A DNA stretch of 64,000 bases, taken from assembly GCA_964247055.1 (NCBI GenBank), contig OZ176055.1, forward strand, positions 992,001 to 1,056,000, in the 5' to 3' direction. A model generated the notes under the pieces. That model was not told where the DNA came from and ran no database searches. It saw nothing but the letters and a program-made list of their open reading frames with translations. The DNA comes from Paragordius varius. Lineage: Eukaryota > Animalia > Nematomorpha. The translations under genes and the position numbers were made by a program. Of the stretch, positions 15,873 to 22,043 are shown in pieces (positions within the stretch are counted from its first letter, which is position 1; each line of letters starts with the position of its first letter).

Positions 15873-16807
15873 ATATATTTTTTTATCAGAATATATTTAT
15901 TTAATCAAGATATTTTTTTATGCCCCGCGATTTTGTACACTATGTTATATATATATATATATATATTAAATAATGTAATTTATTTAAATAATAAGATAGA
16001 ATGTGTGATAAAATAAAATTTTGGATAAAATTTTTTGAATAAAAAAGGAAAAATTAAAACATTTCTTTTATTTTTTTACGCATTCCAGCTTATTTTTTAA
16101 ATAAATTACGTATATATTTAAAGTTTACCCAAAATATTGCGTTCAAAATGATTCAAAGCTTATATAAAAATATGTTTTTTATAATTTGCAAAGTGGAAGC
16201 GTATGTTTTTACAAAACATCCAATCATTGGTGCGTTTTTCTCCATTGTATTTAATTTTATTCAACCTAATGTACGACCAAATGCGATTTTTGGTTTAGAC
16301 TAATAATAGAAAAAAAAATAATAACTATTTTCTAGTCTGTTGACCGCATTTTATTTCGGTATATTCGTAAACCTAAATTAGCTACCGAATGATATATGAA
16401 ACATAAACGCAGCTTTTTTGATGCGCACGGTATACCAGTAATAATGTTTGAAAGCAAATTTTATATAATTTTAATATTTTAATCTAAAGTCCAAATATTA
16501 TGCCCATATCAAACCCGTAAATAGTATAGAACCGGTTATTGAACGTAAAATTTTAATATAGGCGCCCACGGCCGCACGCGGCGTGTTTTTTATGGCCCTG
16601 AAATTTTTATTTTATTTTTGATGTATAGAGTTTAAATATCTCCATATGCATTTAACAGCTATGCAACATTTGTCGGTATTATATGGGGAGCTCTTGAGAC
16701 AAGAAAAATGTTTAATTCGGCCCCTCAAATTTTTTAGTAAGAACCACTGGAAAAAGCTTTATATTTTAGAAATATTTTTAAGTTTCTTTGGTGTTACTAA
16801 CGATTAC

Positions 16808-16813
<6 letters not shown>

Positions 16814-16856
<43 letters not shown>
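16814..16856. repeat. (TA)n microsatellite; others at ~15945, 37030, 38910, 41717, 42035, 46410, 48610, 51295
   Basis: Direct reading. Confidence 0.95.
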
Positions 16857-16859
<3 letters not shown>

Positions 16860-17375
16860 GTTTTTAAAATATCTAAGTAAAACTGTTTGGGATCAATTCT
16901 ACAAAATTAAATTTTTGAAGTGAAGATCTTTAGCACCATCAAATATTGTAAAAAAATGTGGCGACTGCTTGAAAAAAGTTGTTTTTGACTGAAAAATGGT
17001 AAAAAAAATTGTTTAAAAAATGGAAAATTACGACCAACTATGTAAGCTTTTAAAAAAGGAGATGCGATTTAATTCCTTTTTTTGCGTTTATTTTAAGGAT
17101 ATCATTCTCATTTTAACAGTTCTTTACGATGAATTTTCCAAGTATAAGTATTAAGGGTATATTTTTGTACTTAAACTACATAAAATATATATCCGATCTA
17201 CGATCGCCGTGGCAAAACTCCTAAAAAAGGCAACTAAATGCTTTTTTAATAAATAATCAAAAATATTGTAAATCACATAGGTATAAATTTATTTAGATCT
17301 AAAAATGGAGCTTGTTGTTGAATATAGTATAGAGATAGTAGAATGTGTGTGATTGGGAAGGGTCGTTTATTTTGA

Positions 17376-17933
17376 CTATTTTCTTCCTATGCCAAAATCA
17401 TAACCTTCAAAATTATTAAAAAATTATTTTATATATATATAGTTTGTTTTTTATGGCGACATAAATAGCCATTTTATTTGTGGTGCAAAAATATAAAAAT
17501 TATAAAAAATATTTTGCTATTAGTGCAATTACATATTATCGAAACTATCTACAATCAAATTAAAGTAGTAAATTACATAACTTGAATATCATACTTCAAA
17601 AATGTTGTTAAGATTTTAAAACAGGAATTAACCCCTATTTTAAGTAACGATCTTAGTTTAAATAATATCTTAAAAAAACTGGCGGTACCAAAGTTTAGCT
17701 ATACAAACCTTGAAATTTATCGACCAAGTATGCAGAAATTATTTTACCGTCAAATAAAAATGATAGTAAATTAAATAATTACGCCTCGTAAAAGGAGTTG
17801 TTGTTGTTCGGGTACATCCACAATTCCCTTGATTTGCATTATTTGCAGGGGTTGGGTTTGCCATAGTAACAGCGAATATGCTAGCTAATACCATTACTGA
17901 AAGATATATGACGGTGAAAGATGGGAAGTGCAT
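17376..17933 (-). CDS. Small secreted neuropeptide precursor (59 aa), allatostatin-A/FGLamide-like (YDFGI-amide)
   Basis: Exon 1 17933-17783 (ATG; ends AGG C|GTAATT) plus exon 2 17404-17376 (tttgaag|GT TAT GAT TTT GGC ATA GGA AGA AAA TAG) gives MHFPSFTVIYLSVMVLASIFAVTMANPTPANNANQGNCGCTRTTTTPFTRRYDFGIGRK*. It has a hydrophobic signal peptide, a dibasic RR and a G-RK amidation signal. Confidence 0.75.
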
Positions 17934-19124
17934 TTGATTTGATAACAATGTAGATGTGAAAATCGAAGAAATTTATTAAAACTTATATATTGATTTATCT
18001 AATTTTTAGCCATATTTATACCTTTCATATGTACTATGTGAGAGGTGATTGATTTATCTTACCAAATATAAATTTTTGATGGACATGTCTAAAAATAGTT
18101 ATTTATACAGTAAAGAAACTTACCCTGGACGGTTATTACCCAATGTTTTATTGATGGGCCATTTTGCTTTGGATAAATTTGGCTTAGTTTAGTTATCAAT
18201 TAATAGTCTAGACATGATATTTATTTTTGCGATTTATATTTAGTAACATTAAAGTTGGTAAAAAACCTAAAAATATATATACAAATATACATCCTTAACC
18301 ATTATATTTGTAACTAATATTAATAAACAATATCTAAATCAAATTTTTGCAATCAAGGCAGTTAATTTTTAAACTCAAAGATAATAATAGAATTATCGTA
18401 TTACCATTATATCATAAGTCGTATAATGTATTAAAAATAAATTCATTTAAAATAAGTCCAACAAATAAAATTTATATTCCAATAAATGCCAAATTAAAAA
18501 GATGTGCATTGTTGTAAATTCTGAAAAAAACGCTTAAATTCCAATAATTGTTGTAATGATATAATATAATATCTTATAAGCTAATTTTTTTTGATTTTTT
18601 CATCATGTCACTTTCAATTTTTATATAAGAAATATGTCTAAGGTTTTTTACTAAATTAGCTTTTGCTAAATGTAAATATTAATAAAAGTAGTTTTTGCTT
18701 AGTATTGGGGTGTCGAACACAAATGGCATTATTGACCGATTTTCGACCCAGAATATCAGAGGGAGACCGTGTCGTATTATAAAAATAAAAATGATTATTT
18801 TTAATACTTTAAGAATTCTTTACTCCAGAGCGGAAATTCCCATGAAATGTGTTCAAGGTAATGGGCCAAATAGTATGCATTTTTATGTGAATCAATTTTT
18901 TTATAGACATAAATGTGTAAAACGTCCCCAACCCCAACCTTTTAGGCGCAATTTTTTTCTTTGAATTTTTTAAAATCGCTAATACAACAAGGTAAATAAT
19001 AATATTATGGTAAAAAAATGTTATGAAACAAATTGTGAAAGCTTTCAAAAACATTTTAGCGCAACAAATTTTTCATATAACAATAATTACACTATATGAT
19101 ATTGCTCTTTCGAGCTGTCATATT

Positions 19125-19640
19125 CTTAACCATTTCGCTATAGAATTCTGTCTATGGCGTCCTAACCTTTTACGTTTAGTTTTGCCATGTTCCCCTTAAC
19201 TGCATCAATCCATCGCGTTTTAGGGCGCCTTCGTCCCCTCTTATCTTTCACAATATAATCATCAATCTTTTTACCAATTTAAGTATTATCTCTTCTTTCT
19301 ACATGTTCGAACCATCTTAAACGATTTACCATCATCTTGCGTTATCGTTTAATTTCCGTACTTCCTCTAATGTATATTTTACTCACCTTGTATTTCCTCG
19401 TTACACCGCACACAATCTAAGCATTCTCATTTCACAACCTCTCAGTGCCTCTCTTCTGACATTTAATCCCCATGTGATAGTCTGTTAGCTGTACAGCACT
19501 GTAAATCTTAACCTTGACTGTTAAAATATTATTATCGCGCAAAGATCTTTTTATAATTTGCCCAACTATTAAGAACTCTTAAATTTATATCATGCGTTAA
19601 GGACTGCTGAATCGCTCCTAAATATTTGCATTCCTCCTGA
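19125..19640 (-). pseudogene. 3' fragment of a second RTE-clade LINE
   Basis: Minus-strand translation gives RLRWFEHVERRD...KRGRRRPKTRWIDAVK with stops, the typical RTE C-terminus. Confidence 0.8.
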
Positions 19641-20443
19641 CCTTTTAATATCGACCCTTTTCTTAATTCCAATTCTCGTTTTTTTCCCACCGAAAGCTGT
19701 TAAATCGAGTATAAGATTCCCAATTTTCCGCCTTATTTTTAATGAAAAAACAGGACAATAATGTTTTATAATTTAATATTAACCATAACAAAAGATGGTT
19801 TAAAACTAACCCAACATGCATTTTTCCACAAATGAAAAGTTTTAATAAACAAAATGGTATTGTATGTAGGACACCGGTCTTAAACACTGTTTGCGTGGAG
19901 TACCAGATTCGAAACCCTAAAGCTGGGAATTTTCTAGGTAGGGGAGTGTTAAAGCTCTCACAAATCCTGATATTAATTAAGTCCTACCCTTTTAAAAGGA
20001 AAAAAATGTCTCTAATTCTGTTTTTTTATATTATTTTTATATTCATTAAATTTAAAATGTGTGGTATTCAAGTGTTATAAAAACTAAATAAAACTTTATT
20101 ATACATAAAAATTGAAATGACGAAACGTAAAAATATAAAGACAAATATTTTTAACTAAAAAACAACCATACTTTTTTCCTATAAAATAATTTAATTACAA
20201 TCGTATACTACATAATTTCTTGCTTAAATCTTTATTTCCTATTTATAAGATTCGATAAGTTGGATTCTTTTAAAAAGAATTGTTTTTATATTTTTACGTT
20301 ATGTCCGTCTAATTTCAATTTTTCACTGTATTTTTATGATGATGCTGAGCATTTTCATCACCTCAAATTTTTAATTTTAAAATATTGCCTTTGATTAATT
20401 TAGAAATATATAAAGCACAAATGTCCATTTGTATGATTTGGGG

Positions 20444-22043
20444 CAGGAGTTCTTAAACCTTTTTAGTTCCCGATCCCATTTATGATGCGAGTTCCTTAAC
20501 AACCCCAACAAATCTAAAAAAACAGTTCTTCTAGATAACACTTAGAAATTTTGTTGATAATATTTATCAAGATTATTTCGGTTTTGAGAGATTGACAAAA
20601 ATAAAATTTTTTTATAATTTTCTATAACATTTTCTGATTCATAGTAAATTTATACAAGTTACAAGCTGGCCCTGTTACGCTTTAATTGTGGCGTAGTTTT
20701 ACCGAACTATTCTTAATAATTTACATTAAATAGAGTTAATGGAGATAAAAAATAATAATAAATATATTTAATAAAAAGAATATCGTATTATTCTTTTACG
20801 GGTTTTTACATAGGCTGAAATATTGTTTACTCGAAATCGACCATATAAATGTCCCTTATTAAAGTTAATATTCAACTATCATTAATTTATTTGATGATTT
20901 TTGTTTTACGAAATCATGGTTAGAAGTTCTAATTTGTATATGTTTATATATCTGGGATCAAGGGATATAAAAAGTAAATCATTTGTGGTCCCTTTTTAAA
21001 GGGATTGAGATTATACAAATTTTAAATGTGTTTAACTGAACTCGTATGGCTTCTTAAGTTTTTTGAAAATTATCCAAAACTAGGGCTATGTATGGCGTCA
21101 CAATTTAAAACTGATAGACCTCTACCCATAGACCTGCATGTAAAAAGCACAGAGTTAAATTCTTTGTTTTTATGCTCAAATATTTGGAATCATCTTTGAT
21201 ATCATCGTCTCATGGGGTATTCGAAAAAATACTTTAACACTAAATAATCGTTATATGAAGGCGTTTTAGGGCATAAATTAACGGCTAATAAATTACGGGT
21301 AATATTTCAAGCTTTTCTTCGTAAATATTCTGTAATTTAGCTCCAAAAGCAATTTCTATATAGTGGCGGAGTTTCGGCTTCTGTTATCCAGCAACCAATA
21401 TAAAAACTCAAAACTAAGAAATTTTGATTTTTAACAGAGAATAACTCGAATCCTCAGTGAATTTTGACGGTCTCATACCCTGGGCAAAATATTACTTAGT
21501 TTTTTTGAAAAAAATGGGATTTTACGGGTGAAACGGGTAAAAAGGAGCCTAAATTAAAAAAGTAAGCCAGCTAGGTTCAGCGCAATCGAAAAAAATAAAT
21601 ATAATGATATTTGAAATCGAATGGTCCAACAAGTTTTCCGGAAAATTGTCTCAAAGACACGATTTTTCTGTTCTGTTTTCAAAAAAACTCGTTTTTTACA
21701 CAAGGTGGGCCCGAACAGTGAGCCTCATTCAAAAAAGGGCGAATTGTCGGAGCAATGATTAATAATTATATTTTTTTGACATTTGGATTTGAATGGTTCT
21801 AACGGTTTTCCAACAGATCACAAAGCCAGCATTCATTTTTATAAATATACAGATTATGATCGGAATAGAAATGCCAGAAGATTTTATGATTTTATCTACA
21901 ATGAGTGTTATTTTTCTTTTTATAACAATAATTTTACAAGTTAAAAAACATTTTTTGTTAAATTGTATTTTTATCACTCGCGACCCCATAATTTTGCTAC
22001 GCGACCCCAAATAGGGTCGCGACCCATAGTTTAAGAAGCCCTG
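20444..22043. mobile_element. hAT (Charlie-like) MITE, ~410 bp of its own sequence, split by a nested Helitron
   Basis: TIRs caggagttcttaaac / (rc) cagggcttcttaaac match 13/15. 8-bp TSD atttgggg (20436-20443) / atttaggg (22044-22051). Subterminal gcgacccc repeats. Confidence 0.82.
20662..21853 (-). mobile_element. Non-autonomous Helitron (copy 2)
   Basis: Reverse-complement homology to 62547-63700. The 5' end A|TCtgtatatttataaaaatg is at 21853. The 3' end is tentative (CTTG|T at 20665-20662). Confidence 0.7.

Follow-up and report, generated by a model that had tools for sequence, protein, structure and literature searches.

Gene Structure

The locus at 17376-17933 is on the minus strand of the window, the whole stretch of 64,000 nucleotides that was analysed, and can be read as a two-exon micro-gene. 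The list of open reading frames gives a frame of 69 amino acids here (17739-17948, minus strand) that starts with TTG. When the strand is read, the first ATG of this frame is found at 17933-17931, with an A at position -3. No upstream ATG is present in the expected 5′ UTR of the micro-gene, and the open frame upstream of the ATG at 17933 contains neither an AG nor an ATG. Since there is no AG in the open frame before the ATG, exon 1 can only be the first coding exon. A TATA-like box, TATAAATA, was read directly at 18013-18020 (minus strand), 87 nt upstream of the ATG, which is a weak signal when taken alone at 27% GC.

The coding part of exon 1 (17933-17783) consists of 50 codons and one additional C. 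Its first 25 residues (17859-17933) comprise the start codon and a predicted signal peptide with the hydrophobic core FTVIYLSVMVLASIFAV. The prediction relies on a crude rule and on the Kyte-Doolittle profile, whose maximum of 2.3-2.5 spans residues 7-23 before it drops below zero; the hydrophobic core was placed at residues 6-22. According to the -3/-1 rule, the signal peptide is likely cut after T-M-A. The rest of the exon (17783-17858) was read directly as a pro-region: an Asn/Thr/Pro-rich spacer that contains C-G-C and ends with AGG and a C, the first 1.3 codons of an Arg-Arg site.

The reading frame would then be interrupted by a predicted phase-1 intron of 378 nt (17405-17782, GTAATT...TTGAAG) with a GC content of 0.22 and a TA microsatellite inside. 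At 17782, C|GTAATT would serve as the donor, which has a C in position -1 and a T in position +5; the acceptor would be TTTTGAAG| at 17407-17405, in which the AG occupies 17406-17405. Exon 2 (17376-17404) comprises only 29 nt, (C)GT TAT GAT TTT GGC ATA GGA AGA AAA TAG. It completes the CGT codon for Arg and continues with Y-D-F-G-I, a Gly that can serve as the amide donor, R-K and a stop codon at 17378-17376. Five bases after the stop there is an AATAAA polyadenylation-like signal (17366-17371, minus strand), which is again weak alone in AT-rich DNA.

The joined product has 59 amino acids and ends with ...F-T-R-R-Y-D-F-G-I-G-R-K-stop. The Arg-Arg convertase site directly before the peptide is built from AGG and the split codon C|GT, and the segment Y-D-F-G-I-G-R-K-stop at 17401-17376 belongs to the product on condition that splicing uses the AAG acceptor. 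The original prediction had described this donor, acceptor, intron and 29-nt second exon, and reading of the strand placed each of them at the coordinates given above. The layout that it had proposed (signal peptide, spacer with CGC, RR, YDFGI and GRK in 59 amino acids) likewise agrees with the DNA, and so does its view that the intron passes through the RR site.

Splice Context and Base Composition

Exon 1 has a GC content of 0.42, as opposed to 0.22 for the intron. A GC island, defined as 150-nt windows with a GC content of at least 0.38, extends from 17765 to 17960 and coincides with exon 1 almost base for base; immediately past the GTAATT donor the GC content drops to the intron level. Such islands make up 11% of the 64-kb window, and the others correspond to SLC34 exons, a LINE and giant ORFs at 28-34 kb.

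The frame that carries the YDFGI tail remains open for just 15 codons, in which one AG occurs, so an exon carrying the tail must begin at 17404 in phase 1. Apart from that of the acceptor, the predicted intron has 11 AGs, all within its first 266 nt, and the 110 nt leading up to the acceptor are free of AG. The first AG past an AG-free zone is normally the acceptor used. The introns of the neighbouring SLC34 gene in the same window measure about 60-400 nt, and one of its donors, GGC|GTAAGT, is close to the GGC|GTAATT of the micro-gene. The acceptors are different: AAG in the micro-gene versus TAG in all five SLC34 introns inspected. A TAG acceptor is also available at 17388-17386, 18 nt past the AAG, and its use would give a product ending with ...TRRRK-stop. 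Other donor and acceptor pairs for exon 1 within 4 kb were rejected, as they yielded AT-rich junk only and nothing coding-like. In the six frames of the 64-kb window, exon 2 is the sole case of the motif [FYWLM]G[LIVMF]G-basic.

Expectation by Chance

The genome is AT-rich (about 27% GC) and consists of 110.6 Mb in 44 contigs. Genome-wide there are 21 occurrences of the pattern Y-x-F-G-[LIMF]-G-[KR] and 18 of the reversed control pattern, and the bare motif is thus at chance frequency. From the motif counts, about 0.3 [YF]xFG[LI]G-basic-basic-stop tails are expected per genome, and two were seen: exon 2 and a locus on contig 4 (L065) that is described below.

A control for the whole arrangement was made with 82 other FG[LIMF]G-basic sites of the genome and their flanks, which were taken through the same splice-model procedure. 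The model required a GT[AG] donor, an AG acceptor and a compatible phase, with a signal-like ATG ORF no farther than 1.4 kb upstream. Six of the 82 sites permit a model of signal ORF and GT..AG intron in which a basic residue lies no more than 12 residues away. A dibasic site within 10 residues was found at one, which ends with FGFGRYI-stop, and no site has, in addition to the dibasic, both a first exon rich in GC and a tail with the amidation signal and a stop. One false positive of this procedure (L033, G000:C4:10399934-10402950, plus strand) was set aside. The long ORF of this locus includes a signal peptide, and its cysteine-rich region (...CQPLTIPMCKNLGYNMTTFPN...) resembles Frizzled on visual inspection.

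ATG ORFs that reach 50 amino acids are common: 323 kb contain 374, and 12% of these are signal-like. Signal-like ones with a GC content of at least 0.40 are few (5 in 646 kb of strand). For an AstA-type family, the joint chance expectation per genome was put at about 1e-3 to 1e-4. After allowing for about 40 peptide families, it amounts to a few percent at most. As a chance pattern, the whole arrangement is very unlikely.

Copy Number, Sequencing Reads and Strain Variation

The locus is present in a single copy, which means that it is not a transposon fragment. No paralogues of exon 1 or of the DNA of the locus were found in the genome, and a protein word search with exon 1 returned no relatives. 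A full HMMER search with exon 1 produced a sole match, a protein of 608 amino acids, which was discarded as a tandem-repeat artefact. For the ORF neighbouring the micro-gene, an exact-protein look-up gave no record.

The four sequencing runs that cover the locus are represented by DNA contigs that continue through the intron, and sampled words of the locus were found in none of the putative RNA runs. In a strain that is about 3% diverged, the differences listed for exon 1 are at 17930, 17912 and 17845 and correspond to H2Y, V8I and A30G. All three are non-synonymous and their rate is about that of the flanks; exon 2 is only partly covered. Neither purifying selection nor disruption can be read from these differences. 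TA-rich microsatellites are present at 17417-17455, inside the predicted intron, and at 16798-16869; they break the short-read contigs, and the strain coverage of exon 2 is patchy for this reason.

The segments 19174-19674 and 20009-20342 show a summed contig depth 100- to 2,000-fold above that of their neighbours in four DNA runs, with many loose ends. They are very high-copy repeats and are situated about 1.3-2.4 kb upstream of the micro-gene.

Other FG[LI]-Amide Loci in the Genome

The clearest AstA-type precursor of the genome, as judged from its sequence, is encoded on the plus strand of contig 4 (L065:1018-1521, equivalent to G000:C4 at about 7,427,561-7,428,064). It is a single-exon ORF of 167 amino acids with a signal peptide, and the precursor ends with KR-AYDKNRFSFGL-GKK-stop, so that it holds one peptide. 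A word search gave no homologues of this precursor. Its language-model neighbours are generic neuropeptide precursors, including helicostatins and galanin, which is weak evidence.

A candidate for a second FGL-amide locus is found on contig 8, where two FGLGR-stop sites (G000:C8:4015512-4015529 on the minus strand and 4022176-4022193 on the plus strand) are inverted and 6.6 kb apart. The chance that two of the 17 genome hits would be so close by accident is estimated at about 2%, and the pair is probably a duplicated small FGL-amide gene. No multi-copy AstA gene was detected in the genome with three codon patterns and PF05953, and clustered AstA-type motifs occur nowhere in it. It seems, then, that one peptide per gene is the local rule for FG[LI]-amide genes. 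Such a rule raises the prior for the micro-gene and makes its single copy less surprising. The original prediction had called the single-copy layout unusual. The one copy was confirmed; the label is weakened, since the clearest AstA-type precursor of the genome is a single-peptide precursor as well.

Two groups of repeats imitate these motifs. Near-identical copies of a LINE endonuclease (L068, L075, L081, L087 and L088, at G000:C4:11100083, C6:939489, C6:5130105, C8:6281509 and C9:906496) translate as ...SGDLNATLG...GGFGLGKRNLRGDKL..., and this endonuclease motif accounts for the excess of FGLGKR hits over the control. A dispersed repeat with ...SPTQRLIQKKRLI... and ...FYGG[LV]GK[RK]... was encountered at L094, at L095 and in the window at 21553-21759 (plus strand). 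It was rejected as a buccalin-like mimic and not a neuropeptide gene.

Relationship to Allatostatin-A

The YDFGI-Gly-basic tail fits the form of AstA peptides, Y/F-x-F-G-L/I followed by Gly and a basic residue. Two further features of AstA precursors are present: an N-terminal signal peptide, as predicted from hydropathy and a crude rule, and a basic convertase site, here Arg-Arg. The tandem copies of AstA precursors are absent, as the micro-gene has one peptide. The earlier assignment of an AstA core, Y-x-F-G-[LI]-Gly-basic, agrees with the tail, and YDFGI-amide is documented in ant AstA, where AST-A3 of Atta sexdens is LRNYDFGI-amide (PMC10194420). On its sequence, the micro-gene is AstA-like and not a proven member of the AstA family.

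A genome search with the Pfam family Allatostatin (PF05953) was blank at E<=10; the cut-off of this model, 33.5 bits, is hard to reach for a single copy. Pfam finds nothing in the 64-aa ORF that contains exon 1, or in the contig-4 precursor. The genome family scans gave no match to the PHM amidating-enzyme domain (PF01082), nor to 7tm_6 (insect odorant receptor) and Chitin_bind_4 (arthropod cuticle). These blanks may be real losses, or exon-by-exon scans may be insensitive in an intron-rich, AT-rich genome. With the same caveat, the two arthropod-type blanks go against the insect and cockroach setting in which the peptide had originally been placed.

Interpretation

We consider it somewhat better than an even bet that the locus is a genuine gene of two exons, which encodes a secreted 59-residue prepropeptide and is spliced as proposed. 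It is probably a real minor AstA-like paralogue. Three other explanations were weighed against this one.

It is rather unlikely that there is no gene at all and that a chance frame in AT-rich intergenic DNA was picked among the approximately 1,700 windows scanned for neuropeptide-like motifs. Such a frame would be in keeping with a bare motif at chance frequency, with the abundance of ORFs of 60-90 amino acids, some of which have hydrophobic starts (see the ATG ORF counts above), and with a locus at which all four runs are DNA and exon 1 has neither relatives nor a sign of selection. The joint probability calculated above, a few percent at most even over some 40 families, speaks against it, however, and chance explains neither the exon-sized GC island nor the AG-free zone. 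Exon 1 could also be real and give another product, either the unspliced ORF of 64 amino acids (...TRRNYLIYYHFYLTVK) or the ...TRRRK form made by splicing to the TAG at 17388-17386, with YDFGIGRK as a coincidence. The GC island and the signal-like ORF stand independently of exon 2, and TAG, the acceptor of all the SLC34 introns inspected, is just 18 nt away from the AAG. Nevertheless, a tail expected about 0.3 times per genome would have to land by chance 378 nt downstream, in the right phase, and complete an Arg-Arg site. In addition, the AAG is the first AG after an AG-free zone of 110 nt, and the GC content right past the GTAATT donor is already that of the intron. We regard this alternative as improbable.

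A young or decaying paralogue would have an intact structure that is not under selection or meaningfully expressed, either no longer or not yet. The strain comparison speaks in favour of this scenario, because the three listed exon 1 differences all change amino acids and accumulate at about the neutral rate of the flanks; the splice signals are weak, and no paralogue or relative is detectable. On the other hand, the differences listed for the diverged strain include no stop, no frameshift and nothing that alters a splice site, and the changes are conservative and confined to the signal peptide and the spacer. These two parts evolve fast in all neuropeptide precursors. The scenario is judged unlikely.

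If the locus is a genuine gene, as we favour, its product would be processed in several steps. Signal peptidase would cut near T-M-A|N, a prohormone convertase would cut after RR, and a carboxypeptidase would remove K and R from the C-terminus. The Gly left at the end would then be converted to the amide, giving YDFGI-NH2 with a calculated [M+H]+ of about 613.30. Where RR is left uncut, an N-extended amidated form of 34 residues that includes the C-G-C motif would result; a dimer of this form through CxC, as had been suggested, is pure speculation. The peptide YDFGI-NH2 may act on an AstA/galanin-type G-protein-coupled receptor, and the micro-gene would serve as a minor paralogue beside the main single-peptide AstA-type gene on contig 4 of G000, which would supply AYDKNRFSFGL-amide.

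A broader proposal is put forward tentatively, and we think it doubtful as a whole. A multi-copy AstA ancestor may have been replaced by dispersed one-peptide genes, namely the contig-4 gene, the probable inverted pair on contig 8 and the micro-gene. The micro-gene would then encode the bare five-residue core, the shortest natural AstA-type peptide, in one of the smallest spliced neuropeptide genes known and with a convertase site that is built by splicing.

Neuropeptide genes as small as 59 amino acids escape gene finders, and no papers describing nematomorph neuropeptides were found in the literature searched. If real, the micro-gene would provide an AstA-type ligand for a phylum, Nematomorpha, with none described. 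Its layout of one peptide per gene would set it apart from arthropods, rotifers and molluscs, whose precursors are multi-copy, and the gene would be a natural test of the pentapeptide core alone as a physiological ligand. Hairworms manipulate insect hosts, and YDFGI is the C-terminus of insect AstA peptides; secretion of the peptide into the host is speculation that finds no support here.

Comparison with Known Systems

The closest resemblance of the peptide itself is to arthropod AstA. The cockroach peptide Dippu-AST 13 ends with YDFGI-amide, and to our knowledge no AstA as short as a free pentapeptide has been described. Arthropod AstA (PF05953) and the micro-gene have in common Y-x-F-G-[L/I] followed by Gly and a basic residue, a signal peptide and a preceding basic site. 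RR cleavage sites are also used in Drosophila AstA (bioRxiv 10.1101/2024.07.20.604414), and the precursor sequences of Drosophila and Daphnia are given in the supplement of the same preprint. The architecture is different. Arthropod precursors have 100-250 amino acids with 4-14 tandem peptides of 6-20 residues, whereas the micro-gene has 59 amino acids, one peptide of five residues placed right at the C-terminal end, and a cleavage site that is split by the intron. It also has no detectable precursor homology and no Pfam match, and its host, a nematomorph, is not an arthropod.

The contig-4 precursor of the same genome is similar to the micro-gene in that both have a signal peptide and a single C-terminal AstA-type peptide followed by Gly, two basic residues and a stop. 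It differs in having one exon and three times the length, and its peptide of 11 residues ends with Leu and would be released at a KR site. The two have no sequence similarity outside the motif.

The AstA/buccalin-type precursors predicted for rotifers and priapulids are multi-copy, with 4-5 peptides that end with xGGL or ASGL (NP-HMMer preprint). Like the micro-gene, they come from non-arthropod protostomes and were found only by motif-aware searching, but the end of the micro-gene peptide is xFGI and there is a single copy. Brachionus AIDKMRFYGGL-amide and the AYDKNRFSFGL-amide of contig 4 agree at 9 of 14 positions, the following Gly and the first Lys being counted. Brachionus-type AstA and vasopressin motifs are absent from the genome, and a rotifer origin of the DNA was rejected for this reason. 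In the nearest phylum, the nematodes, the AstA/buccalin-type system consists of NLP-5 and NLP-6, which are MGL/MGF-amides, and the receptor NPR-9. Like the micro-gene, the nlp genes in question are small and encode few peptides; they differ from it in the C-terminal motif.
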